A stretch of 64,000 nucleotides of DNA, from assembly GCA_015680685.1 (NCBI GenBank), contig MNCI01002585.1, positions 452,105 to 516,104 on the forward strand, in the 5' to 3' direction. The notes below the pieces were generated by a model. It saw only the letters and a list, made by a program, of their open reading frames with translations. It was not told the origin of the DNA and did not search any database. The stretch is from Gnetum montanum (lineage: Eukaryota > Plantae > Gnetophyta). Below, piece by piece: positions 5,280 to 43,100 of this stretch. Within the stretch, counting starts at the first letter, position 1, and every line of letters starts with the position of its first letter. The position numbers were made by a program, and so were the translations under genes.

Positions 5280-8200
5280 TGTGCAACTATTTTCAAATCT
5301 TTTAGAGATTAGGAAAGGTGTAGGCTCTCCATTGCCCAATCTTATACTTCTCATTTCCCTTGCTCACCACGTTGAATGAAAGATCTTCCAATGGTGCATC
5401 CATGGTTTGATTGTTGTTGGTTTTGGCCTCATCTACTCTATGAGGCTTCTTGACTTCGTTCTTAATAGTATGAATCTCCTCTTGAAACTCCACTTTGAAC
5501 CCTTGCTCTTTGTTAATGTTGTTAACTGTTAAGAAGACCACATTGTCAACATGAATAATTATTTTACCTCTTTCATAAGGTAGGTGAATTTATTGGTGGA
5601 TGGGTGAGGAAACAACCTGTAATTGAGCTAACTAAGGTCTCCCTAAGATGAGGTTAAATCTTATTATCTCTTCCACCACCAAGAAGTTGGTTGTTGTGGG
5701 GAATTACTTCCCCACTATGAAGTTCAAAAAAATAGAGCCTTTTACAACAATCCATGATCCATTAAAGGATTTTAGAGTGGAGGTAGAAGTGTTTTGCATG
5801 TGTTTTGATAGGCCTAATCATTCAACAATGGTATAATGTATAAAGTTAGTTTCTTCTCCATTGTAAACATGGACCTTGTATTGCCCAATCCTTATAGTTA
5901 TGAAGAGAGGAGCCCTCATTGTCTCACCATCTTAAGGGTGGTTTTGATTTTGCTATTATGAAACACTAGTGCCATTGACTTCATTTCTTCCTTAAGTAAG
6001 GGTGGCACCATTGTTGCATGGATGAACTTCTCACTGGCAGGGATGTCCTCATTGATAGAAATTAAGATCAAAATTTTTACTAATGCTTCATGATGTGTAG
6101 TAGAAGTCATTACTAAGTTGTATAGGCTATGAGAAGTGTTCTTTTTTTTTTTGAAAGACTATTTAACCTATTTCATGGCATTGAGAAATTATTTGTCATT
6201 TGCGATAGGCTTCTCATTCTTATTGAATTTGACTTCCTCCATTTGTTCCAGGTTGCAAACTTTGTGTTTCAATGTTTGTGGTTTAATCTCCTTCCCCTTC
6301 TCTTGTTGTTTGGGGTCCTCCCTCAATTGATTGGTTGAGGTATTTTGAGCATTAGAGCCCATATGAATAGCTAAAATAGGTGTGAGCTTCAATGGGCCCA
6401 CCTCTTTCTAAGCCTTCACCTGGCTATTGTCTTTGGCCTTGGGTTTTGGTGTAGACTTCTTATGTTTTTAGTTAGGTAGTTTCTTGTTGTTGGGCTATGA
6501 AGAAGTCGTTACATTAGCCACCATGAGAGGACATTGTTCGATTGGGGTTGTAGGTTTGGTTGTAGCAGAAGGGAGTACTCTAATGATGAAGGGTTCTTTG
6601 GGAGATGTTAGTGATGGTATCCTACAACAAAAGGAGTCCTTGAACTAAATGAAGTGAAAGGGCCCCTTTCATTGCAAGGAGATACCTAAATAAAAAATGT
6701 ATCCTTAGTAGGTCTTGGATTGTTACTCATGTTAAATGCCACTATCATGTATGGACTATTGTTTGCATTCAATGGGTCTTTGCATACTTACATTGATTGG
6801 TATTGTGACCTAACTATGTTGGAAGCATTAAGCACTGGCTCATTGTTATCTATCATCTTTTGCAAGTCATACTTTAGGGCTAAACAAAAATTGGTATCAT
6901 GACCTAGCAACTGATGGTAGTGACAAAATTGGTTAAGTTTAAAGTACTTCGGTATAGGTGGATAATCCTTGGTTGCCAGAGTGGGATCCTTAGTAATTTT
7001 GCAAAATCAATCATGCCTCTTGTGGACATTCTCAGTCATTTGTTTGTATTGGATTCTATCACTCTTGAGCAACTGTCCAAGAAGTTTTAATGATTTTAGT
7101 TTTAAAGTAGTGTACTTCAATCGATCTTTCCTCTCAAAGTTAGATCTTGTATGGTTGGATGTAGAGACCCCTAATATTGATGGTTTGTTGGTTGTAATAG
7201 GAGCCTTGAATTAGCTTGTTTTGACCCCTATGTAGCTTTATTATCTTTGGCCATAGTGGCCATGGCTACATGGTTTCTTTTCCCCCTCTCCTTGTCCTTC
7301 CATGTGTGTTGATTCTTGTATACTATATAGGCAGGGTCATGGTTGGCCTCAACAAAAACCTCTATGTTCTTAGTCTATGAGAAATCTTGGCTAAGGGTTT
7401 GTGAGTCCAAGTAATATAATTTAGACTTGATGAAGTCATTAACTGCCTCCTTAATAATGGCTAGAAGGTGAATTTTGGCTATAGGTTTAGGAATCTTGTT
7501 GAGTAGATAATTTCATCATTGGATGAATTTCTAGACAAGTTCAAGAGGCCCCTATTTGATTTTCATTAGTTGGTCTAGGGTGGTATGGTTTCAAGTTATA
7601 CTTAAAATGATTCACAAACTATGAAATCAAGTCTTTTAGAGAGGTGATAGATCCTCTAGTAATGCATTGTACTAGTCTAGTGCTTTTCTTATAAGTGACA
7701 TAGGGAAGATTCTCATGATTGTATGGGGCCAAGCCTATAGCAATAGACATTTAAAATGGAAGGTGGTAAGGTATGCATTGGGATCATCCTCACTTTTGCA
7801 TTTAGTGAATTGTTATATAGGAATGCCTAGGGGAAGAGTAATTTGTGGGATGGTTGGACTAATCTGATCATCTTGATAAAAGTCCATTATCTTTAGCATT
7901 TGTGTAGTAGAGGCCTTGAGTTTACATAACTCTTTTGTGAGATCTTGAATCATTTGAAGGCTTAATCTAAGCCTTAGGGTACTTTGGTAGGTTGTGGAGT
8001 TTTCACGAATAGTTGTGGAGTGAGTTGAGAGGCATTTGGCCTTGTGATGGGTAATGGTAGAGAGGGAAAAGGTTGAGTTATCATTGTTGTAGGAGGAATA
8101 AATAGTGAAAGTAAAGTTTGCGTAGGTACTTGAGGGACAAAGGAGGTGAATGGGGTATAAGACACTTGGATCACCTGGGATCCCATTGAGAGGCCCATTG

Positions 8201-24723: not shown

Positions 24724-27302
24724 TCAGATGTAGTACAACTTAAGGTACGAGTGGTTCACCGGGTTGGCGAACTCGTTGTCGTCCATGTCTACCAGCTTGA
24801 AGGCTCCATTCTTGAAGGCTTTAGTGACCATGTAAGGGCCTTCCTAGTTGGCTAAGAATTTGCTCACATTCTCACGGATAGCCTTGAGGACGAGGTCTCC
24901 CTTCTATACTAGCCGTCGATGCAGGTCTACATGGTTCTTTTGCTGTTGCTTGCTCTGGTAGTGCTCTATGTGTCTTAGCGTCTACACGTGCTCCTCCTCT
25001 ACTGAGTCAAGGTCGATGATCCGCAACTCGTTGTTCTGGGCTTTGCTCACGACATCCGCGAGGATCATTTGGAGTGATGGTACCTGCAAATCAAGAGGCA
25101 ACACAGCTTTAGATCTATAAACAAGGCTGTAAGGGGTCTTACTTGTCATGGTTCTACATGTCGTTTTGTAGGCCTAGAGAACGTAGAGGATCTGCTCGTG
25201 CCACCACCTCTTGCTATTGCCAAGCATTCGCTTCAACAAGTTGATGGTGGACTTACTTGTAGCCTCCACATTCCCATTCGCCTACGGATAGTACGGCGAG
25301 GAGAATGATTGCTTAATGCCTAGATTGCTACAGAAGGTTCGGGTTTCCATACTACTGAATTGTGGCCCATTGTCGATCACAATAGTCATTGGAAGCCCAA
25401 ACCTTATCATAATGTTATTTAGGATGAAATGGAAGATTTGTTGAAACATCGTTTTCCTTAGGGGAATAGCTTCCACCCACTTAGTAAAATATTCGATGGC
25501 AGTGATAATGAAGCCATGACCCGTGGAGGACTTAGGCGTGATAGGTCCTATGAGGTCCATTCCTCATCGTTGGAAAGGCCACGTGATTTGCGTTGAATGT
25601 AGGTCCGTAGGTGAGATGTGTATGAGATTTGCGTATCTCTGGCACGTGTCACATGTCATGACTTTTGACAAGCAGTCACGCTCCATGTGGGGCCAATAGT
25701 ACCCTAAGCGTCTAATTTTCGCGGCCATAGCCCTAGGTGCTATATGTCCACCACACAGTCCCTTATGCACTTCATTAACTACTTTCTACACCTGCTCCCC
25801 ATCCATGCATGCCAGCAATATCCTATCGTAAGAACGTCGGCACAGGGCATGATTCCCCATGAGTGTATATTTCTGGGCACGCTTACGGATTACATCTCTT
25901 TGAGCAGATGTCAGTCCACCTGGTGGTTCACCGTGTTGTAGGTAGACCTTAATGTTAGCGTACCACTCCTGGGTATAGATGTGTTGGAGGTGGCAAGGTA
26001 GATAAAGAAAGGCTTGTCCCTTTGTAGTGGATGCACAGTTGGGAGGTGCAAGAGTTCTTTCTTCAAGTCATTGAAGGCTTGTTAACACTGGGTTGTCCAC
26101 TCGAAGTCAATCCCTTTCTTAAGAAGAAGTTGCATGGGGTGTAACTTGTTAGTCAACTTCACTATGAACCTTCGGATGAACTGTACCCTACTTTGCAAGC
26201 CATGTAACTCCTTAAGGTTCGTAGGAGGTGCCATATTGACAATGGCCTTGACTTTGTCAGGGTCCACCCTTATTCCGGCATCTAATACCATGAATCCTAA
26301 CATGCATCCAGTTTTCACACCGAAAACACACTTCTTAGGATTAAGACGTAAGTCATGCATTTGGCAACACTTGAGGACTACCCCTAGATCACGTGGATTA
26401 TCAGCTACCTCTTTGGACTTGACTGCTATATCGTCCACGTAGTCATTTAGTGTTTCTAGGATGTAATTACTGAAGATGTAAGTCATGACATGCTGGTAGG
26501 TTGCACCAGCGTTCTTGAGCCAAAAAGGCATCATGGTGTAACAGAATGTCCCCCATGGGGTCATGAAGGTTGTTGTTAGCTAATGCTCCAGGTTGATATG
26601 AATTTGGTTGTAGCCGAAAAAGTCATCCATGAAGGATAATAGAGCATGACCAACCGTAGTGTCGATGAGTTGATCAATGCTTATAAGTGGGAAGTCATCC
26701 TTGATCATCACCTTGTTCAGATCCTGGAAGTCTATGCAGATTTGTATTTCTCTCGTTTTCTTAAAAACCACAACGATGTTGGACACCCATTCCGAATAAT
26801 CAACTGTGCAGATGAAACCAGCTTGGTATAGCTTGGTGATTTCGTCACTTATGGCTAATGCAATTTCTGGTTTGACTTTTCGAGCCCTCTGCTTGACTGC
26901 CTTCATGCACGGGTCTAGGACGATGTTGTGCTATATCAGCCACAGGTCTAAACCCAGCATGTCACTGTATGACCACATGAAGACGTCGATGTTGTGTTGC
27001 AGAATTTTGGCTATGTTTTTGTGCGTCTGTGCGTCTAAGAGGGAGCTAAGCTTTAGCATTTTTACCTTTCCCTTGGGCATGATCACAAGCGTCTCGACGA
27101 GAGGGTCTTCAGTTACATCCCCAACCTCTAAATCTAGAGTTTAGACTAGATGCTCGGGCCAATCTGGGTATGCTTCTAAAGATGCTATAGTGCTAGTTGT
27201 GGTTGACCCCCAATCAATCAAGTCGAGGTTCAATTATCTTGCGAGCTTGCCATGTGGACCTGCTAGGGCTAAAGGTGTGGAGAGTTCGCGATGGATTTCC
27301 AT
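24724..27302 (-). pseudogene. pol (RT-integrase) of copy 2; RNase H region deleted at ~25985
   Basis: ORFs 26580-26906 and 26082-26564 (RT), 25564-25770 (INT zinc finger), 25282-25560 (INT core); ends LKLYYI*. The RT connection DKPFFIYLA joins almost directly to WYANIKVYL. A possible own ATG lies at 27302. Confidence 0.95.
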
Positions 27303-27420
27303 TTTTGCTTAACTTGTAAAAATGAGATCAAAGCCTGGTTAAGAGGCACCTATTGGTAGCAATCATGTATAACAAAAACTTGCAAAGCAATGATGAGATG
27401 TATGATGTAGAGATTAAAAG

Positions 27421-27785
27421 TTTGCCAGTTCAAAGTCATGGAAGACCGTTATGGCATGGAGATGTAGAGTTGCTAAAATAGGAAATGTAAAATTGTCAAC
27501 ATGAGAACATGAAACTACTGAGGAGAAAATGTAAAACTGCCAATGCGAAAATGTGAGATTGCTAGTTTAGTGTCATTGCGGACTGCAAACGTATAATAGA
27601 TCGAAACATGCTAGTTTAAGGTCTTTTCAGATCGCAAAAGTTGCAACTTCTCTGGGGTTTGCTAGTTTAAGGTCTTTTCGGATCAATAAAAGCATGACTA
27701 TGTTACGATTGCTAGTTTAAGGTCTTTTCGGATTGGTAAAAGTACAACTATGCTATGATTGCTAGTTTAAGGTCTTTTCGAACCG
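27421..27785. repeat. Second array of the same hairpin motif (five units at ~50-bp period plus one outlying copy) upstream of pol
   Basis: gctagtttaaggtcttttcgg-like cores start at ~27610, 27661, 27711, 27761, with variants at 27561 and 27424. Confidence 0.85.
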
Positions 27786-27959
27786 TGATAATCAAAAATA
27801 TTTTTTTTTTCATTTTTCAAAAAAGTAAGTAATTAGCTTGAAGCGTGTTAAGATTTTAATGCTAATAGTGCTACGATGTCGTGGCGAGCATGCTACACTG
27901 TACGGTGCACTCCGCATTAAATGGAGAGAGAGAGTGTGGCAAGTTTCCCCTTTTACCAT

Positions 27960-27990
27960 TACAACCATAAATAGGGATTAAACCCTAGTA
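27960..27990 (+). promoter_or_regulatory. Candidate internal promoter of the antisense gene (TATA-like ATAAATA + telo-box AAACCCTA)
   Basis: ATAAATA at 27967-27973, AAACCCTAG at 27980-27988, short (GA)n at ~27924, all upstream of the first exons. Confidence 0.4.
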
Positions 27991-28196
27991 AGCTTGTCAT
28001 TCTTGCTGTAAGAGTGTAGAGCCCATATTCGGAGCACAAGGCAATTTTAGAGCGATTGTGCTAACAGTGAGCAAAGCAATTTTTTGCACAGCGACAAGGA
28101 AAAGAAGTCTGTGAATAGGACAATGGCTCTGAAGAAGGAACGNNNNNNNNNNNNNNNNNNNNNNNNNNNNNNNNNNNNNNNNNNNNNNNNNNNNNN

Positions 28197-28982
28197 GGGA
28201 GTTCAACCAGAACTTGTTCAACCATGATCGGTTTGAAGAGTTCTGTCCACTCCTCATCCAGCCAACCCTGCCCCTCGCACTGATCATAGGGAATAGAATA
28301 TGCGTCTAGGTAGGTGTGATATTCATCCCTGCATTGACCAATCACGCCCGCCCACATATTCTTAGCAGAAGAGAACTCCTATAGGGCTATCTGTGTTGTA
28401 GCCAATAGACCCGGTCGGTCGTGAACCCCATCCTTGTTGATGAAGAACCTAGTAACAAACGCATACTGTTAGCATTAGGCCAATATGGCCAGCGTCGCAC
28501 AACACAGTGGAGCAAGGCTACAAAACTCACCCGCCAGCACAGTAGACAGTTCCCTAAGGGTTCTGGAAGCATGTCATCATAAAACATGCGAGGAATAATG
28601 TGTTGTAACGGTGGTAGCAGCTATACTTAGGCATATCCTAGATCCAGGTCAAATGCCTTAACCCTATTGGGTGTTGACTGGATCCTTCTCCCTACTTGCT
28701 CATAATTTCCCTGTTGGTCAAAAACCTCAGAATGCCCCGACTTGCCCCAGGCAATATGGCTTCTATTATGCCAACCGCCTCCTCCTCCTCTAGAAAGGAC
28801 CAAATGATCACATTGAAGTGGTCGAGGAGGAATTGTAAAAAGTCCTGTGCTTCTTTCCTAAACCAGACCCCCCGCTCTCCCATACGTATCTTGGGAGGAG
28901 GAGCATTGGCCACAGGTTTGCTCACATGGCACAAGACCCCTCTAATTTCTAAAAAAATCAAGATTGGCCTTAGCCCCATCCT
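28197..28982. other. Probably mis-oriented contig between N gaps (carries the FCP1-like exon)
   Basis: Bounded by N runs at 28143-28196 and 28983. 28197-28483 is an exact reverse complement of 28984-29270. Confidence 0.85.
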
Positions 28983-31905
28983 NTTGGCCTAATGCTAACA
29001 GTATGCGTTTGTTACTAGGTTCTTCATCAACAAGGATGGGGTTCACGACCGACCGGGTCTATTGGCTACAACACAGATAGCCCTATAGGAGTTCTCTTCT
29101 GCTAAGAATATGTGGGCGGGCGTGATTGGTCAATGCAGGGATGAATATCACACCTACCTAGACGCATATTCTATTCCCTATGATCAGTGCGAGGGGCAGG
29201 GTTGGCTGGATGAGGAGTGGACAGAACTCTTCAAACCGATCATGGTTGAACAAGTTCTGGTTGAACTCCCGCCGTTCCCATTACCGTATAGGCCCGGTAG
29301 GCCAAGCGGTAAGTGTTGCATGCTTAAGTGTCTTTGCAATCTTTGTACTTTCTACATTTTTTATGCTAAATATTTTTGTGAAAACTGTTGCAGGGGCAAA
29401 GAAGCCCCAGGAGGTGATGGTGGTAACTGTCGAGGCACAGGGGGTGAACATCTACTTCAAATATGACGAAGTAGAAGCAAGCCAACACTGGATAAACAGT
29501 GAGGCTTTAGACTCCTTGGTCCAGAACCTCGAAAAGGCTAGACTTATAGATCTATTCTTGGCCTCGAATCTGAGCATTCCTACCGCTGAGATGCTTTCCC
29601 TAATCAAATCCTTTTCTGAAAAGGTAGGCCGCTTCTGCATGCACATACGGGGCATGTAGGTGGTCATTGAAATCAATGACCAGCTATTTATGAACCTGTT
29701 CAGTGTTCCTACTGATGGCATCCTCATAGGGTCAAGGGGCAAGAAGGAGCTGACCCTTCAAAAGAAGGATATTTAGGAGTGGCTGGGGATTGCTAAGGAG
29801 CAAAAAGGGCTCCCTATGGATAAACTCAAAGACGGGCTTGCCTTGGAGATTTATCCTGTCTTCCGTGCTTGCGCATTCCCCTAGTTGCTTACCCAAGGGA
29901 AGGTCTTGGGGATTGAGCAGGCCTGGATAATGCATGAAGTTATGGAGGAGGGGGCCCATTACAACTGGGCCAGCTTTCTATGTAAAGGCTTGCAGGTCGA
30001 AGTCTTGGGACACCGTCAGAAATCGGAGTCCCATTCCAACATACACTATGCCTTCTACATAGGCTGTATGAAGTGCTTGGAAGAGTTTATGGTGGTTCAA
30101 GAGAATGGAGTCTGGGTCATGCGAAATCGTGACCAGATTTCTAGACCATGGATTCGCCAGATCTTTTGGACCATCCGAGCCCAAGATCCCCCAGAAATAA
30201 TTGGAGAGTCATTTTTTGTGATGACCAAGGATTAGGTGGCTCACAATGTTCGTGGCCAGAATAGCATAGGAGAGACGTCCCCTGCTATAGCTGGTGAAAC
30301 ACCGTGGAAATTGTGAATCGGCCTTAGGTAAAGATTCACGATTCAGGCAAAAGAGGAGCAGCGGCTGGCATCTTCAACTTTTGGCAGTTATCATCCTTGA
30401 GCAAAAATAAGAGACATTTTCAAGCATTTAGCAGCGGGAGCGATCATACCTTTTGGCGAAAATACAGTTCTCCCATCGGTGATCCTTGGCAGTTTTGAGC
30501 AGAGACTATCTAAAGCAAAGAAGATAGATCAGAGATCGAGAGATCATCTGGTGCGGTTGGCAAGATCTATTGATTAGACACAGTTGGTTGATAGACATCC
30601 GAGCTTGACCTTCCTTGCACTCCATCTTTGGCTTACAAGGTAGACCGAGCTCTGTTCTGCACTCCTTGTTAAACTGTTTTTCTTATTATTTTGTGTATGT
30701 TTCGCACAAGATAATCGGAGTCTTCCCATTGTAATTTTGTATACAAGATACTCGTTCTTTCGGGTCAAAGTACAGATCTTGAAATCATGCATTTCTCTTA
30801 GATCTGATTCCCTTTATCGCGTTAATGTTGTCATTATTGCAATTTATCTACATCGTTTTCCTCTCCTTTCGCGATCTATTGAATCAAATCATTCCACGAA
30901 ACACCTATAATCTTCATGAATTTACTGATTTAGTAAGTCCCTGTCTGATCGACAAGACCGTTCAGGGCACTGCGAATTCGTTTTCTCCAGCACATTCCTC
31001 GCACGGATCCATGGTTAAGACTATGTACACGGATTTTGTTTGGTATTCCAGTTGCTGACATTTTCTGTCGTTACAGTCGGTAGCATGTCGCAGGGGCAAC
31101 ATTTCATAGCTGAGATTGTGCCCAAAGAGTTGTGATGGAAGAGGCCTCCCCCAACTAAGAAAACCCTTCGCGTGGAGGAAGAGGAGGGGCGAAGACTGCG
31201 GCTTAAACTGAAGAGGACATGACCCCTCATTGGTAAACAATTTTCTTTCAATGCTTACTTTGTTATTGTTTGCTACACTATGCTATGCTAGGCGACATAG
31301 TGTAGCGTAGCACCTGCTTTAGGCTAACTTGTTTTATGTTAATGCAAACATGCTTCTCTGTTGGCAGAGGAAGAAGAACAAGAAAATGGCGATGAAGAAG
31401 TATTGGCCCCTGAGGCGGGGGTGACAAATAAAGACATAGAGGCCCTAGTCTCAGAGGAAAGGGCCCCGATCAAAAATAAAGGAGCTCCTGTCACTAAAGA
31501 AGGGGCTTTTGTCATTAGGGAGAATCCTCCTACTAACGAAGAGGAACCTCCCTTGAATAAAAAAGACGCTGGTTTCCTAAAAGGAAAGGCACCAGTGCAT
31601 GAAGAAGAGGCTTGTGTAGACTCGGTAGGGCCTTCTACCAAGGCTACTACCATTGTCTTGCATCAGCAAGAAGGGAGACCACAACTGGACGCTAGTGAGT
31701 TCGGCAATATGTCTGCCTTGTCACAGCCTGTTTCAGCCATTGCTGCTATGTTTAGTCATGTAACAAGCACTACTATTAATACTGCAAGACCCTCTCTGAT
31801 TCATGTGGAGTCGTGGGTCGAGACCCCTGACAAGCTTACATTCGTGCAGGGAATCGTTGATGACATGATCAACCGTCTCCAGTAGGTGGACCCTGACGTG
31901 GGTAG
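28484..31905 (+). pseudogene. Spliced antisense extra gene of copy 2 (FCP1/NIF-like + PMD/Transposase_32-like + acidic region); first exon displayed inverted; 3' part missing
   Basis: LIFLEIRGVLCH...WFRKEAQDFLQFLLDHFNVIIWS...NTLFL...NP. Introns at 29309-29393 and 31233-31367 (both GT-AG, phase 1) are at the same positions as in copy 1. YNWASFLCKGLQVEV matches FNWVSHLVSGLWDEI of copy 1. Confidence 0.8.
30320..31090. other. ~0.8-kb unrelated, CpG-retaining insertion within an exon of the extra gene
   Basis: Homology with copy 1 stops after GESFFVMTKD...AGETPW and resumes at QRVVMEE...RRLRLKLKRT (copy 1: KRAMMEE...KRLFIKLGQT). Confidence 0.65.
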
Positions 31906-34900
31906 GTAATAGTGTTAGGTACTCTCATGTTTTTACGCTAGAGTTTCTTGAGTTTGTTAATCTTGATATGGTAACGCGATTGCTACGCTTTTTATGTCAT
32001 GGAAACCTCTCGACTCAAATGGGACCTAGCACAGCTTTTGAAATTCGGTGTCGTGCCTAAATTCCCACCTGACGTGGTATCTCGTTGCACGTCCGACGAG
32101 GCTTGCAAATACGTTAACAAAGAAAAAAGCGATGAATGTCAAAGGAGATAATACGTTAACAAAGCAAAAAACGATGAATGTGCAAGGGATGACAAATAGG
32201 CAGGAAAGAGTGGGGTTGCTATGCTATGCATAGTTGCTTCTTCACCCATCGTGGGTTGATTGGAACGTAAGGCCGAGGCATTTCACCAAGGCCCTCGTTC
32301 ACGTCATTGTCCCCCTCTTGGAAGGGAAACTCAACCCATGCACTTTCATTTTGGAGACCGGCCTACTGAGCCGATTCTCTCATTGGATGTTCAACATATG
32401 CATGAGCATGCGCTTCATTCTCAAAGGTTATGACCTCTAAACCCTACTCCATGTTTACGTTACTAATAGCTTGTGTTGCTACTTCGTCACCATGGATCAT
32501 CACTTCTCTGCCTATGTATGGTAGGTGGATTTCCTAGTGTATAGGTGAGGAGACAACCCTAAGTTGTGCTAAACATGATCTCCCCAAGATTAGGTTAAAC
32601 TCGGGCATTTCCTTAACCATGATGAACATAGCGTTTGTGGGGAACTGGTCCCCTGCTACGAAGTCTATGTGAATTGTACCTTTCACCAGGACATGTGCCC
32701 CATTGAACGACCTTAGACACGACATTGCTATGGGTTTGATCTGGTTGACCAAGCCCAACTTGTCCACAATAGGAAAGGGGATGACTTTCATGGCAACCCC
32801 ATCATCAACGTGTACCCTTTGGATCTAGTGTTGGTTGACCCAAATTATGATAAAAAGGGGTGCTGTGGTCACCTGACCCCTTTTGGGATCTTTCCTAATC
32901 GCGTCGTCGCTGAAAGTCAATTGGGATGGTGTAGGCTTTACGGGTACAAAGGGAAGCATGACCGAGTGGATCGCTTCTTCTTCCACTGGCATGTCTTCGT
33001 TGACCGGAATCATTGTCAACATGCAGATCAGAGCCTCGCGGTGGGGGATAGACATTAAGATTAGGTCGTACAAGCTCTGTGTAACATTTTTCTATTTTAG
33101 AGCTTGCTTGACCTGAGTGAGGGTGTCCAAAAGGTCTTGGCCACCCCCCTATTTAATGTTTTCCTCCTCTTCAATTCATCCTAGAAGATGAATTTTCCAA
33201 GGAGGGGCAACTTCGGATCTAGGTTCAGATCCTTTTTGGCAAGGCGATGCAGGCTGGGCTGTCATGGCAATGTTCGTCTTTGGTGATGAAGGTGTAGACG
33301 TAGGGGGCAAAGATGTAGGTTTGGGAATGCCTTGGATGGCATTCCGCTTCGATGTCTCACCTGCGAAACACACTTCTCATTTCTTAGGAAGAGAAGGTTG
33401 TTCAGTTGTTTTATGCGACGCAAGGGCTATTGAATGAGTTGGCCCCCTAATGATGAAAGGAGCTAACGATGTTAGCAGGCAAAGTAGCGTAATTTTTCTA
33501 ATACGCTGAGGCACATAGACCATGAATGGCTGCTAGGGTGGTCTAGGATCATTGTCAATGCCGGTGGCATTGATGACGTAACTGACATTTTTGGCATTGA
33601 GGGGATTTGTGTAGACATGCATAGATTGATTTTCAGGACGTATTGGGTTGCTTTCGTCCAACACCAGTTTTCCCTGGTCGATCAATCTCTGGATGTCATC
33701 TTGCAATGCCAGACAGTAATTCAGTTTGTGATTACACTGTTGGTGGTAGTCACAAAACCTCTCCAGCTTGAAATCCTTAGGAACTGGGGGCTCATTGGGC
33801 AGGGCCAAAGAGGGGTTCTTAAGGAGCTCGCAATAGCGTTGATGTCTGTTGATTGCTTCTTGCAACATTTGCTTGTATTGCATGTGCCCCATTGCCAATA
33901 GTTGCTTCAGAAGTTCTAAAGGCTTGAGAGGCAGTGGGGTGTACTTTGAACGATCTTTACACTCAAAGTTTGGCTTCGGTTGCGTAGATGTCTCAGGTGC
34001 GGGTACTAGAGGTTGCGGCATGATACCCTGCTTGGACATGGCATTAGTTGCAAGTACGGCCATTTTCTTGTTGCTCTTGTTACTGTTGTTACTAGGTCGA
34101 GGCTTGGCCTTAGTTGCCACAGCAGCCAATGTGGTTGTTGGGGCTTTACCCTTGTCCTTCTTTGTGAAGGTGTTTTTGTAAGCGATGTAGGCCGAGTCTT
34201 TGCTTGCCTCAGCTGCATCATGTATGCTTTTAGTCTGAGCAAAGGCTTGGCTAAGAGTGCGAGGGGCGAGGTAGTACAGTTTACACTTGATAAAGTCATT
34301 CACTACACCCTTAAAGATGGCCAACAAGTGAGCTTCTGCGATGGGCTCGTAGATTTCGTTAAGGGTCAGGCTCCAGCACTGGATGAACTTCTGGACTAGT
34401 TCCAGAGGCTCCTACTTCACGCTCATCAGCTGATCCAGCGTGATTTCTGGCTTCAAGTTATACTTGAAGCGCGTCACGAACTGGGTTAGAAGCTCTTGTA
34501 AAGTTGAAATGGATGAACATGGCAGCACGTGTAACCAATCTAAAGACATGACTAATCATGTGCGGCCATTGTTGCAATAAGAGAGACTCAAACCTAAAGG
34601 TAACTAGATGTGTGTTGGGATCCCCCTCCCCATCGTATTTCATGAAGTGTGGGAGAGACATCCCTAGGGGTAACATCAAATCAGGGATTGCAGGGTTGAT
34701 AGGGTCATCCTGGTAAAAGTCCATGACTTGTACCGTGTCAAACCCGAAAGCTTTGAGGCATTTGATTTAAAAATTTAGGGACTTAAAAATTTAAGATGGA
34801 TCTCGTGCATCAAGAAAAAGAACGGGGGGTTGAGAGAAATATTGCAGAAACTGTAAAATAGAAACACTGTTAGACAGAAAGTAATAGAGAGCTCAAGCAT

Positions 34901-34918
34901 TGTACAACGCTTATTGTG

Positions 34919-34960
34919 ACACAAAACGTTTTCGGGGACTTGCACCCCTCATCAGTGTGT
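34919..34960 (-). ncRNA. Minimal type-I hammerhead ribozyme motif, copy A
   Basis: Minus: ACACA-CTGATGA-GGGG-TGCAAGT-CCCC-GAAA-ACGTT-T-TGTGT. Confidence 0.85.
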
Positions 34961-35029
34961 TTAGGCAATGCAGCCAGGCAGCTGAAGCTGCAAAGGCAAG
35001 GGAATGAGCATGCTAGTACATTTTAAATT

Positions 35030-35135
35030 TTATGGACTTAAAAATTTTATGAGCGGGAGTTTAAATTTTATGAGTGGAAGCTTAAATTTTATGAGCAGGA
35101 GTTTAAATTTTATGAGCGGGAGTTTAAATTTTTTA
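35030..35135. repeat. 21-bp tandem repeat (TTTAAATTTTATGAGCGGGAG) x4-5 at the inverted/direct junction
   Basis: Read directly; one more copy at ~35968-35998. Confidence 0.9.
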
Positions 35136-35216
35136 AGTTGGGACACTATTTATACATGTACTGACATACTCATTTCCTTACCTTTGCAGCTTCGGCTTCC
35201 TGGCCGCATTGCCTAA

Positions 35217-35258
35217 ACACACTGATGAGGGGTGCAAGTCCCCGAAAACATTTTGTGT
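35217..35258 (+). ncRNA. Minimal type-I hammerhead ribozyme motif, copy B
   Basis: ACACA-CTGATGA-GGGG-TGCAAGT-CCCC-GAAA-ACATT-T-TGTGT (CG>CA in stem III). Confidence 0.8.
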
Positions 35259-36081
35259 CACAATAGACATTGTGCAATGCTTTGAGATTTCTATTACTTT
35301 CTGTCTAACAGTGTTTTTGTTTTACAGTTTCTGCAGTATTTCTCTCAGCCCCCCATTCTTTTCCTTGATGCACGAGATCCAACTTAAAATTTTAAGACTC
35401 TGAAATTTTTCTCTCTATCTTGTTGCCTTGGAATTGCAGATCCTTGCCAGACAGTGTCTTTCATTGTCCTTTGGATTCTAACCATTTTTAGATCTTTCTA
35501 TTTTTGGTTAGGTTTTAATCCTTGTGCAGGTTCTTCACGGGTTCTAATCGCGTTGCAGGATTATGCGAACCACAACATGTTTCTTCTTGATCCGCGTTTT
35601 GACAACCGCCCTGATGACGTTGGTCCTCTTAGTTGTGGTTTCTTCTAAAGTTGTTTTCTTCAGCTTCTCCACAACCTCTGGCTATTTCTTCTCCGGCAAC
35701 GTTGCAAATCATCTCTCCGTTGCTGTTGAAGATCTTTGTTCGTTGCTGTTTTTAGCCAGACATCTGCGTTCATGACATTCTCTAGTGTTGGACCCCTCAT
35801 GTCCACCATTCAAACATGAGGGTTTCCCTTAACCCTAAACACCCTTCAACTCTACCTTGTAGATCTGATTTGTTGAATGTTTCATGTTCGCCTGTGAAAT
35901 ACTGTTTGTAATATTTTTGTCAGTACATCGTCCCACCCCCATTTCGCCTTTGACGAATGGGGCCTGCTTAAAGTTTATGAGCAGGAGTTTAAATTTTTTA
36001 AGCTAGGACACTATTTATACATGTACTGGCCTGCTCATTTCCTTACCTTTGCAGCTTCGACTACCTGGCCGCATTGCCTAA

Positions 36082-36123
36082 ACACACTGATGAGGGGTGC
36101 AAGTCCCCGAAAATGTTTTGTGT
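36082..36123 (+). ncRNA. Minimal type-I hammerhead ribozyme motif, copy C
   Basis: Same core (CG>TG in stem III). The outer pairing GCATTG/CAATGC and the side hairpin CACAAC-AGAC-GTTGTG are intact. Confidence 0.8.
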
Positions 36124-36389
36124 CACAACAGACGTTGTGCAATGCTTTGAGCTTTCTATTACTTTTTGTTTAACAGTGTTTCTGTTTTATAGTTTCTGCA
36201 GTATTTCTCTTAGCGGCCCATTCTTTTCCTTGACACACCAGATCCAACTTAAAATTTTAAGACTCTAAATTTTTAAGTCCCTAAAATTTTAAGACTCTGA
36301 AATTTTTAAGCTGGGACACTATTTATACATGTACTGGCATGCTCATTTTCTTGCCTTTGTAGCTTCGACTGCCTGGCCGCATTACCTAA

Positions 36390-36431
36390 ACACACTGATG
36401 AGGGGTGCAAGTCCTCGAAAACATTTTGTGT
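36390..36431 (+). ncRNA. Minimal type-I hammerhead ribozyme motif, copy D
   Basis: Same core; the stem II 3' strand is CCTC (G-U tolerated). Confidence 0.75.
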
Positions 36432-37799
36432 CACAACAGATGTTGTGCAATGTTTTGAGCTTTCTATTACTTTCTGTCTAACAGTGTTTCTATTTTACAG
36501 TTTTCTGTAGTATTTCTCTCAAGCCCCCCGTTCTTTTCCTTGACGCATGAGATCCAACTTAAAATTTTTAAAATTTTAAGAGTTTGGATAAGCTGGAATG
36601 CTTGATCCAAACCCTACGATGGTGTGGGTAGCTGGAGAACTACCGAGGCAGCCCCCACCTGTGGAATGGCGGGGGTGGTGGTGTGACCCATCAGGGGTAC
36701 CGTTGGGGTCGCCTCCGCGAGTGGTGCTGCTTGCATTGTCCACCACCTAGCAGGAGGTGCTATTGGAGCAGCAACTGCAGGTTGAGCCGCTGGATAGACT
36801 GCTTATGTTGCCGGTGGAACAAACCATAGCCCCATGTTAGGTTGTACCATTTGTAGGGTTTGGTGGGTCTAAGGGCAGACATAACGAGACATCTACGATG
36901 ATTGTGGAATAGGCGAAGAAGTGAATGGGGTCCACCACATGGACCGGCCCGGGCCCACACACTATGGGTGGAATAGACGTGAATGTAGGAATCGAAATAG
37001 AAGTTGTGTAAGATTGCGAAGAAGGCACAGTGTGAATATGCGGTAGGGTAGCCGTGATTAGTGTGTCATGCGCTACTAGAATAGATTGATGAAGAGTTTG
37101 CGAAGGCTTAGTCGCTGCAAATGAAACAAAAGAATAAGGGCGTTGATACGCCGGGAAGGTGACATGGCTACCCATTGCGATTGTAGTTGCGGGCTGTGGG
37201 AGCATAGGCATGATGACAAAGGGAGCAGTGACAGGCAACGCATTAGCCCAGAAGGACTGGGTAGGAGGGATAGGAATGGGGTTGGTTTGACCTCCTTCGT
37301 CAGATTGGGAATTGAGTTCCTTCTGTCCATCCTAAAAAGTGTCATCTTGGTTAGACACCGTGTCTTGTTGCTCCCTAAGCCTAGCCAATTGGATTAGTTG
37401 ATCTAGAAGCCTTTGGTTTATCTGTGTCAAAGGTATGGAAACACTAGGAGTGGGAACAAATTCCTTCTCATTGTAGTAAGTAAACTCGAAGCTACATTTA
37501 TCTTCGAGTTCGTGTACATCTAAAGGCAGGTTTTCCTGGACCTTTGCATAGAGGAAGCTGTAGCACTCATGTTGCTGGACCAAGCCCTTAGGTCCCCGAT
37601 TTTGATCCTGAGGGATCAACGTGTTTCCAGCATTGAGTTCAGTGGTTGTTCGACACTAGTGGTTTCTTGAACTGTGATGGGAACCTCCACGTTGAAGGTG
37701 TTAGCAATAGTAGTTGCGGAAGCCATTGTTAAGTTAAGCAGTTTTGTGAATGGAAAAAAGTAAAGAAGTTGAACAGCTAAGTAGTTTTGCGAACGAGAA

Positions 37800-38295
37800 G
37801 AGAAAAAAAGTTGGCAAGCAATCAAAAAGAAGGCTTTATGTCTTGCAGGGCTCTCGAGGAACCGTCGAGGCGACTGATCTATACCACACAATGCGTAAAC
37901 AACCGCAAAAGGGTGTCACATTTACGCTAGTGTGTGATAGGGTACAGAATGCATGTAAGACTACCATGAAAAAGGCAAGTCAGTTGGCAACTAGAGGCTT
38001 TATGTCTTGTAGGGTTCCCGAGGAACCATCGAGGCGACCAATTTGCATCGCACAACATGTAAACAACCACAGACAGGTGTCATGTTTACACTAATGCGTA
38101 TCAGGGTGTAGAAAGCTGACAAGACTACCGTAAAAAAAAGGCAAGTCAACTGGCAATTGAAGGCTTTATGTCCTATAGGGTTCCCGAGGAACCGTCAAGG
38201 CAACCGATCTGCACCGCACGACACATAAATAGCCACATATGGGTATCACATTTACGTTAATGCATATCAGGGTGCAGAAGGCTTATAAGACTACT
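37800..38295. repeat. ~165-bp tandem repeat x3 in 5' UTR of copy 2
   Basis: AGGCTTTATGTC recurs at 37831, 37995 and 38161 with colinear flanks. Confidence 0.9.
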
Positions 38296-38321
38296 GTGAC
38301 ATGTGGAAAAGGTACCAAAGG

Positions 38322-40199: not shown

Positions 40200-43100
40200 A
40201 ATAGCAACAAAAGCTAAAATGTTCCCATTCTTAAGCCTCCAAAACAAAAAGAAATTAGTATTTTAGAAAAAAAATTAATTATTCAACTTTCACTAGAAGC
40301 TTTTTTGCTTAAAGTTGTTGAAAAGTGACATCTTTAAGAATTTAGTATTTGATACCTAAAAATAGATCATAGTTATGTTCTTACTATTAGAAAATAAGTG
40401 CACAATAAAGCTTCCAAATAGAGTAGAGAATAAGGGGTCAAATATAATTCCAAATGTAAAGAAATAAAGTAGATAATTTAGGTTGATCACCAAGAATAAC
40501 TTCATTGATGCTTAATTGAAAGTTTTTACAAATTCTAGATATCCATTTCAAAGCATGTTGAGTAACAAGGCACTTTAAAAAATATGACAAAATGATTTTT
40601 CACTTCTACAAAGAGGACATTAAGGAAAAACATTTCCCATATGTTTAAGATGAGTGTCAATAAGAAGACCTTGATGAATAAGATACCATAAAAAGTATGA
40701 ATTTTAGAAAATGTAGGAGCTTTTCAAATAACTGTTATTTTTCTTATTTGTTATGAATAAAATCATTCTTTATAATAATCTCATAAGCAAATTTTGAAGT
40801 AAAAGGAAAAACATATCTACCATCCTTCCAAAATATCTATAAAATCCTAATACTAATTATTGTTAAGTTTAAATAAATTATTAAAATTAAAAATTAATTT
40901 TTCAAAATTCTTTTTCTTCTTTATATTCAAACCATAGAGGCTAGAAACTTCATTCCAAGTAATTCATCTTTCATGCATATGTAGATAAGAAATTATAGTG
41001 ATACCCAATTTATTCTAACTGTTACACAGTCTAGATGCATTGGTAGTCGAACCTTCTTTATTAAAAGGAAGTTACCGTGGGCTAATTTGCTTAAGAAAAT
41101 CTTTTGAAACTATAATATGATTGTAATTCCAATATTTACTAAGCTTGCACTATGTCTTTCAAATCTATTTAAGAACTAGAGAACTAGAAATAGAAATGGA
41201 TTGAGGAGAAGGAAGACAATTAAGAAACTTATTAGAAAATCATCTATTATCATTCTTAAGTTTTCTTTACATAAGTTTGTTTCTTAAAAGAAGCATTAAA
41301 ACATGATCTTCATTAATGTTCTCTACAATCCATTTTGCTATAAGAGAAATACCTTGGTTATAATAATTAATGAGGCCAAGTCCTCAATAATTCTTGCTAC
41401 TTGTGCAAATATCCCAAACAACTTTAGAAAAATCTTTTCTATGTTTCTTAGCAAACCAAGGAAATCGATGGATCATATGATCAATTCTCTCATATGAAGT
41501 TTTAGATGGATCCCAACAACTAGGGTAATAAACATGAGGTAATTGAAGCATTTGCTTAATAACTAAAACTTTTCTAATAAGGGTGAGCTTTTATTATTTC
41601 CATTTATCAAGCTTCTTTTCAATTTTATCAATCACATAATTTCATAAAATAGTAAGCTTAAGGTCAAAAGAAAAAAGTATTCCTAAAATTTTAAAAACAT
41701 AATCTTTTTTCAAGATTTTCCAAGGCTTAAGAATAACCTACTCATCAATATTTCCATTACAATAAACAAAAATTTTTGGCCAATTGATTTGAAAGCCAGA
41801 TAACACATAATAATCCTCCACTCTACCTAAAAGAGTATTAATATGTTGTAGAGAATTTTTGATCATAAAACAAGAATCATTTGCAAAGTGCATGTCAAGC
41901 AATTATGTACCTTGATCATTAATTAAAATTTCTTTAATGAAACGCATCTATAGATCATAATGTAGATTATGTGAAAAAAATTTATAGTAATAATAAAAAG
42001 ATCAAGATCTAGAGGACAACCTTGATAGATTGACCATTGAAGGAAAAAAGAAAAACTTAGTCCAAAATTAGTAGCAACTTTAGCATTAGCATTAGTGAGC
42101 AAGGTATGGAAAAGTTGAATAAAATAATCATTAAATCCTACTTTATAGAGATAAGAAATAATAAAATTCCATTTAATCTTGTCATAAGCTTTGGCATAAT
42201 ATAACTTAATGAAAGCAATGTCTTTGTTAGTATTAGAAGTCCATTGCATTCCCTCCCAAGGTGCAATAATATTATTTAAGATATGTCAACATTTATAAAA
42301 ACTAATTTGTTGAGGTCTAATGATATCTTCAATAATCTTCTAAATTTAGTAATTTATGCATTTAGCTAAAATTTTATAAGTATTATTATGAAGAGTAACT
42401 AGTCTTTACCAATATATTAAAGATCTCCATTCCTAGAAAGAAGACAAGTTAAAGATTTATTAATATTTTTACCAGGAGAAATTTTTTTAATGGCTTCTTA
42501 GAAAGCATGAAATAGATAATCTCTAATGATATTCCAATGCTAAAAAAATTTAATAGTAAAACCATCAGAACTTGGAACTTTACCATATGCTAAACTAAAG
42601 ATCATTGCTTTGATTTCTTCCATTGTAATTTTTGGTTCAAGAATACTTTGACATGCTTTTGTTATAAGATGAGGAATATGCATCTTAAAGGTTTAGAAAG
42701 ATTTCTTACTAAAACCTTTAGAAGAAAAAATAGAAAAAAAAAGGATTTGATTAAAACTTCTTAATAGTCTCATGATCTTCAATGATGGAATCATTTATAT
42801 AAAATGATTCTAGTTTAGGTACTTGATCTTTTCTTTTAATTTTTTTTAAAAATTCCTTGCAAGGTTTATCTTTCATTTTAGTCCAACATATGCAACTTTT
42901 AGTGAGAGCACTTCAAAATTATCCCAACATTGTTTAGCTTAATGAGATTTAGCTAAGGATTTTTGATTTTTAAAATCAAAGGGATTTTTATCTAAAATAA
43001 TTTGCATTTTCTTTACAAATTTTGAAAGATCTTCTTCAACTTGACACTTATGCTTAGTAAATTGCTTTCCAAATTATATAGCATAGTTTATGACTCTACA

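Follow-up and report, generated by a model that had tools for sequence, protein, structure and literature searches.

A high-copy, non-coding insertion with four type I hammerhead motifs in Gnetum montanum, a candidate plant non-LTR retrozyme

Analysis of a 64,000-nt stretch of the Gnetum montanum genome (Gnetophyta; GenBank assembly GCA_015680685.1, contig MNCI01002585.1, positions 452,105 to 516,104 of the forward strand; hereafter the window, with coordinates counted from its first letter) uncovered a non-coding insertion of ~1.8 kb at 34767-36577. It carries four copies of a ~300-bp unit, one inverted and three direct, each with a hammerhead ribozyme motif, and it interrupts the gag region of a decayed Ty3/gypsy retrotransposon. 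The inverted copy, unit A (34767..35040, minus strand, 274 nt), was delimited by inverted repeats and alignment and is 84-87% identical to the other three; its 3′ end is the left edge of the insertion. Unit B (35103..35402, plus strand), delimited by direct repeat and alignment, is a direct copy at the position of an upstream pseudo-long terminal repeat (pseudo-LTR). It is followed by an internal region of 565 bp (35403..35967, plus strand) that is non-coding, hairpin-rich, and itself highly repeated in the genome, and which together with unit C (35968..36267, plus strand) makes up one full-length unit of 865 bp. Unit D (36276..36575, plus strand) is a short direct unit whose 3′ end is the right edge of the insertion; both C and D were delimited by repeats and alignment. 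The order is A(-), B(+), internal region plus C(+), D(+), such that A and B stand head to head, one 3′ end is common to all units, and the insertion is bounded on either side by a unit 3′ end. Start-to-start distances are 865 bp from B to C and 308 bp from C to D. A first-pass annotation of the window, made from its letters alone, had described an inverted unit, 21-bp repeats, a direct unit, a ~560-bp spacer, and two more direct units, and the repeat and alignment analysis bears this layout out.

Short tandem repeats occupy two of the unit junctions. The head-to-head A/B junction contains 4.3 copies of a 21-bp repeat (35042..35132, plus strand), of which the full-length unit C holds about one copy, while the C/D junction contains 3.6 copies of a 16-bp repeat of the unit's 3′-terminal motif (36250..36306, plus strand). 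This terminal motif is AAATTTTAAG, and its repetition extends unit C by 32 bp relative to unit B, an extension that, by analogy, resembles the "tail" of Penelope-like elements (PLEs). Units B, D, and roughly A start near an internal AAATTTTTTAAG motif that mimics the 3′-terminal AAAATTTTAAG, and the motif AAATTTT(T)TAAG is present both at the unit 3′ end and ~300 nt upstream of it. The equal length of the short units may therefore be due to template switching at the AAATTTTTTAAG/AAAATTTTAAG microhomology. Pairwise identity among units is 84-92%, with differences that are mostly transitions and a CpG observed/expected ratio of 0.55; the G+C content of the element is 39%.

Contigs from a DNA run of the same organism contain gag without the element, with joints 34727>36583 and 34729>36585. 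The existence of these empty-site contigs indicates that the element is an insertion, and a diverged gag copy at ~7800-8000 in the window is likewise uninterrupted at the corresponding place. The flanking host sequence reads on the minus strand, such that the element lies in the orientation opposite to that of its host. Below the insertion, the gag region at 33533..34766 carries a gag-type motif (KYDGEGDP...HL); above it, the region at 36583..37241 was recognized from a gag-like frame and from the empty-site joints. The junctions fall within 34758-34768 and 36577-36583, each uncertain by ~10 nt, and the position of the right one is obscured because the unit's TTTTAAGAC end resembles the target. 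No clear target duplication was found at these positions, at most a 3-bp GAG repeat, in keeping with the first-pass annotation. The same annotation had proposed that about three gag codons were lost, a number that cannot be fixed because the other gag copy in the window is only ~69% identical and each junction carries its uncertainty of ~10 nt.

The family is highly repeated in the genome. The DNA run placed 14,359 contigs on a 2.5-kb stretch (2,501 letters), and summed DNA word depth reaches thousands throughout the element, the 565-bp region included, a measure that is not a copy number. Searches of metagenome contigs (with a non-ribozyme unit anchor and with a relaxed hammerhead pattern), viral contigs, and bacterial and archaeal genomes returned no further copies outside the window.

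As had also been noted from the letters, the element has no convincing open reading frame (ORF): none exceeds 70 aa, and Pfam gave no significant match among ten of its 26 ORFs of at least 30 aa. A 64-aa ORF over unit B has no homologue in a protein search. No tRNA gene was found in the element with ARAGORN, which rules out a tRNA-derived origin of the short interspersed nuclear element kind. A tRNA-Met primer site is absent from the whole element, and no polypurine tract was seen in it by eye.

A 26-nt core comprising CUGAUGA, helix II, and GAAA occurs four times, at 34930-34955 (minus strand), 35222-35247, 36087-36112, and 36395-36420 (all plus strand), the last with one mismatch (CCCC>CCUC); its chance expectation is 0. 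A structural descriptor was also applied, consisting of a 5-bp helix I, CUGANGA, a 4-bp helix II with a loop of 3-11 nt, GAAA, 0-8 nt, U, a non-G letter, and the helix I partner. It matched exactly these four sites in the window and none in 115 simulated 64-kb windows, even when relaxed with shorter helices. All four copies possess the 11 fixed core letters (CUGA.GA + GAAA), U16.1, and a non-G residue, U, at position 17. In topology the motif is type I: ACACA, the 5′ strand of helix I, lies ahead of the core, a 7-nt loop closes helix II (GGGG/CCCC), and in the consensus GAA is followed by AACGUU, then the U of position 17, then UGUGU. Next to the core, helix I pairs at 5/5 positions and helix II at 4/4 in every copy, with a single G-U pair, in D. 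Together these results confirm that the four type I hammerhead motifs are real rather than chance matches, and they agree with the first-pass annotation on their number, on their class, and on a palindromic stem III, the last borne out by the self-complementarity described below.

Within a single copy, helix III amounts to two A-U pairs around a 2-nt CG loop. The hexamer AACGUU is self-complementary, and two copies could form a 6-bp duplex of -3.5 kcal/mol for the consensus. Hammerhead A (34919..34960, minus strand) is identical to the family consensus, with helix III AACGUU and a predicted cut between 34924 and 34923. Hammerhead B (35217..35258, plus strand) has AACAUU and a predicted cut after U35253; hammerhead C (36082..36123, plus strand) has AAUGUU, the perfect complement of B and D, and a predicted cut after U36118; and hammerhead D (36390..36431, plus strand) has AACAUU, the G-U pair in helix II, and a predicted cut after U36426. 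Only unit A has kept AACGUU; AACAUU and AAUGUU are the two products of its CpG decay. The single core string that the first-pass annotation had assigned to every unit consequently fits the inverted unit A but not B, C, and D, which depart from it in helix III and, in D, also in helix II. The decayed hexamers remain fully complementary between B and C and between C and D (-2.1 kcal/mol), and B/B and D/D do not pair. The alternation CA, TG, CA along B, C, and D was considered as evidence and discounted, having a one-in-four chance under random CpG decay.

Helix I can be extended past its 5 bp by a small hairpin (CACAAY-AGAC-RUUGUG) and a further, outer helix of 7 bp; the resulting branched helix I appears in the ViennaRNA folds of B and C. 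Across the four copies, 97.6% of cells in helix I, helix II, and the extended branched helix I are pairable. Minimum-energy folds contain helices I and II in A, B, and C, and neither as drawn in D.

The hammerhead is also the best-kept part of the unit. Among gap-free alignment columns, 3/42 are variable in the hammerhead and 55/217 in the rest of the unit (Fisher p = 0.008), in a thin sample of four linked local copies; of all 42-column windows along the unit, those that vary least overlap the motif. Weak support comes from the DNA run, where among the majority differences listed 32 fall in the element and one of these in a hammerhead (36100, loop II C>A). The corresponding loop II variant, UGAAAGU in place of UGCAAGU, makes up about one-fifth of DNA word depth at 36100 and at the equivalent positions of the other copies. 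In RNA reads at 36100 it was seen in 10/14 from the oligo-dT run X19, 5/7 from X16, and 1/7 from X17, and expressed copies may belong to a subfamily other than that of this copy.

In our view, these features probably mark an old composite insertion of a hammerhead retroelement that is PLE-like and non-autonomous, a plant counterpart of the animal-type "non-LTR retrozyme"; PLE machinery would have put it in place. PLE insertions form partial tandems that give rise to pseudo-LTRs, often with an inverted 5′-truncated copy beside the upstream one and an optional tail of 30-40 bp (PMC8557442). The inverted-plus-tandem layout that the first-pass annotation had called PLE-like matches this published pattern, shared 3′ ends included. 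One PLE protein has been shown in vitro to cut and extend both DNA strands, with internal reverse transcription starts explaining the tail (PMC11167929). Hammerhead pairs on opposite strands, 100-700 bp apart, have been seen with PLEs; hammerheads A and B lie on opposite strands ~290 bp apart.

On this evidence, a retroelement family that is high-copy and protein-less would have contributed a single composite insertion here, in which the full unit of ~865 bp (the 565-bp internal region and a 300-bp ribozyme unit) is preceded by partial unit B, followed by partial unit D, and accompanied by inverted partial unit A at the left. The sequence would have been copied in by a PLE reverse transcriptase (RT) acting in trans, an enzyme that would prime on both cut DNA strands and switch templates at AAATTTT(T)TAAG. 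In a plus-strand transcript, adjacent hammerheads could pair their helix III hexamers to form a double hammerhead, and cuts after U35253, U36118, and U36426 would release RNAs of 865 nt and 308 nt with ends suited to ligation into circles. The first-pass annotation had given the same two fragment sizes, which are correct as arithmetic on the motif spacings. The predicted 865-nt B-to-C RNA folds better than its shuffles (z = -5.3), and the 565-nt internal region alone does as well (z = -4.45). We advance only tentatively, and with more doubt than belief, the fuller proposal of an abundant streptophyte family of non-LTR retrozymes with 865-nt units, double-hammerhead cutting, and circular RNA, copied by resident Penelope-like RTs.

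The motif itself has counterparts in animals. Canonical metazoan type I hammerheads have a helix I of 6 bp, a helix II of 4 bp, and a helix III of 1-2 bp with a palindromic loop of 2-4 nt, and are active as dimers (PMC4209133). The geometry here is of the same kind, with helices I, II, and III of 5, 4, and 2 bp and a palindromic loop of 2 nt. Metazoan non-LTR retrozymes are tandem repeats with type I hammerheads (Cervera & de la Pena 2020, PMC7229834), and a 2026 preprint proposes that non-LTR retrozymes derive from PLE pseudo-LTRs (bioRxiv 10.64898/2026.07.22.740005). The element resembles them in its type I motif, whose helix III is palindromic and so weak that it would need a partner copy, in its tandem units of ~300 bp (308 from C to D), in its G+C content below 45%, in lacking an LTR, a primer site, and (by eye) a polypurine tract, and in being non-coding and present in high copy number. 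Unlike them, it resides in a streptophyte, its main unit of 865 bp has a structured interior of 565 bp where animal units measure 150-450 bp, its helix I is branched, one of its units is inverted, and its circular RNA is so far a prediction. Satellite 2 of newts and salamanders also has a type I hammerhead whose helix III is too weak for monomer cleavage, the double hammerhead being the active form there, and its activity depends in part on an extension of helix I with an internal loop (PMC6155905). That satellite differs in sequence and host and forms long uniform tandem arrays, while the insertion described here is dispersed and composite.

Several features are shared with PLE pseudo-LTRs (PMC4209133; Craig et al. 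2021, PMC8557442), namely a hammerhead in a repeated terminal unit, a partial tandem with an inverted 5′-truncated copy, no clear target duplication, and possibly a variable extension at one 3′ end, of ~32 bp here. Unlike PLEs, the element has no RT or GIY-YIG ORF between its repeats. Among plants, PLEs have been described from Selaginella, where the hammerheads are canonical and helix III is complete; in the green lineage, Chlamys-type PLEs mostly lack a hammerhead. The motif here looks animal-type.

Other observations weigh against this interpretation. No PLE-type RT was found next to the element or among those of its ORFs that were scanned, and the element can thus be at most a non-autonomous derivative of a PLE. 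Rfam hammerhead families gave no match at the gathering score over the whole window, nor at E<=10 over 2.1 kb or a 96-nt piece; the model search proposed in the first-pass annotation therefore found nothing at any threshold tried, which we attribute to the missing helix III. The predicted cut triplet, U-U-U, conforms to the N-U-H rule, and it is an uncommon one among natural hammerheads. Covariation across the four copies is limited to one compensatory pair, in the branch hairpin, and does not exceed that of shuffled alignments. The strand opposite to the 865-nt RNA folds equally well (z = -5.6), and the 308-nt C-to-D RNA is not better folded than shuffles (z = -0.48). Like retrozyme RNAs, the internal region is rich in hairpins, and the folding results favor neither strand.

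Three RNA runs of the same species yielded 44-104 reads each; nearly all are 88-95% alike and, falling below 95%, derive from other copies. They lie on both strands and mostly run into unrelated sequence, and at the few-read depth reached there is no excess of read ends at the predicted cut sites, nor any other position at which many molecules begin or stop. One library was made with oligo-dT and two are of unnamed kind; circles may be lost from such libraries, and a circle junction is indistinguishable from tandem DNA. No expression of this old copy was detected, and that of the family is only weak in these libraries. For an active PLE, published RNA-seq likewise lacks cleavage ends (PMC11167929). 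PLE hammerheads are moreover poor cleavers in vitro, and cleavage is dispensable for PLE insertion in vitro (sources including PMC11167929).

An alternative close to the favored non-autonomous retroelement is that the sequence is what remains of an ordinary 5′-truncated autonomous PLE, namely its 3′ untranslated region and pseudo-LTR, with the 565-bp region as decayed PLE sequence. Truncation is indeed common among PLE copies, and it is as isolated motifs, left by truncated elements, that most PLE hammerheads occur. The internal region fits this account poorly, since the eight of its ORFs that were scanned have no Pfam match at E<=1 and the region is highly repeated in its own right. We consider a truncated PLE unlikely, while granting it some weight.

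Amplification at the DNA level, by a foldback or miniature inverted-repeat DNA transposon or as a satellite-like repeat with the ribozyme as passenger or fossil, could account for the ~270-bp terminal inverted repeats formed by A and D, the AT-rich ends, the short tandem repeats at the junctions, and the high copy number. Such an origin appears improbable, however, given that no target duplication is recognizable, that the inverted arm belongs to a set of four unit copies and not to two matched termini, that a single 3′ motif terminates every direct unit, and that the hammerhead is the best-kept part of the unit.

Plant LTR retrozymes mobilized by Ty3/gypsy enzymes, as in flowering plants, offer a third comparison. 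They have monomer-active type III hammerheads, true LTRs, a tRNA-Met site, a polypurine tract, 4-bp duplications, and G+C above 55% (Cervera et al. 2016, PMC4918200). The element shares with them the plant host, the lack of coding sequence, a structured interior, and the presence in direct repeats of at least two hammerheads, spaced by a few hundred to ~900 nt; it also sits inside a gypsy element, and its ribozyme spacing of 865 nt lies within the published range of plant circles, 600-1000 nt. None of the hallmarks is seen here: the hammerhead is type I and not III, there is no tRNA-Met primer site and, by eye, no polypurine tract, no 4-bp target duplication was seen, G+C is 39% against >55%, and four units, one inverted, stand in place of two LTRs. 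The type I topology, the four units, the missing primer site, the G+C of 39%, and the absence of an ORF together exclude the LTR-retrozyme model, and we give it very little credence. A chance hammerhead-like string in a repeat, to which the blindness of the Rfam models to the motif might point, is negligible as an explanation in light of the empty simulated windows and of a full core with both helices intact in four units that differ by 8-16% elsewhere.

The host element and its surroundings were characterized in less detail. Pfam matches place its integrase at 25282-25560 and its RT at 26082-26564, both on the minus strand. The nearest Atlas clusters of the gag ORF are eukaryotic, with Streptophyta the commonest group, and one of them carries Retrotrans_gag; a homologue search with the ORF found none. 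Within 25282-32800 (minus strand), ~6 kb of non-matching sequence separates the protease-side ORFs at ~32.5 kb from the RT at 26.5 kb. Upstream of the host gag, 37829-38297 holds about three tandem copies of a ~164-bp repeat that are 76-78% identical, probably within the leader of the gypsy element. By visual inspection, a 108-aa ORF at 41923-42249 (minus strand), where the window is AT-rich, resembles part of an RT of the long interspersed nuclear element type.

Units A and B together form an imperfect inverted repeat of ~255 bp (34769-35409), with two arm pairs of 127-128 nt that are 89-90% complementary. The sole strong Rfam match, MIR821 (49 bits against a gathering score of 249), reflects this inverted repeat only. 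A long hairpin of ~255 bp is expected in any read-through transcript, including the RNA of the host gypsy element, and could plausibly serve as a source of small RNAs and a silencing trigger for the family.

In the publications consulted, type I hammerhead repeats and their proposed PLE origin are an animal phenomenon, and plant retrozymes are a separate system based on LTRs and type III motifs. Under the non-autonomous, PLE-style reading that we favor, the Gnetum element is a further member of a known element type in an unusual host, a plant. If that reading is true, the partnership between PLEs and hammerheads would have its host range widened to plants, which would gain a second source of ribozyme-made circular RNAs. 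The fuller proposal, with circular RNAs copied by resident Penelope-like RTs, would if true make this the first system of its kind beyond animals, and plants would then have two independent retrozyme systems. With many copies and a clear unit, the family is a tractable case for asking what role hammerheads play in PLEs.

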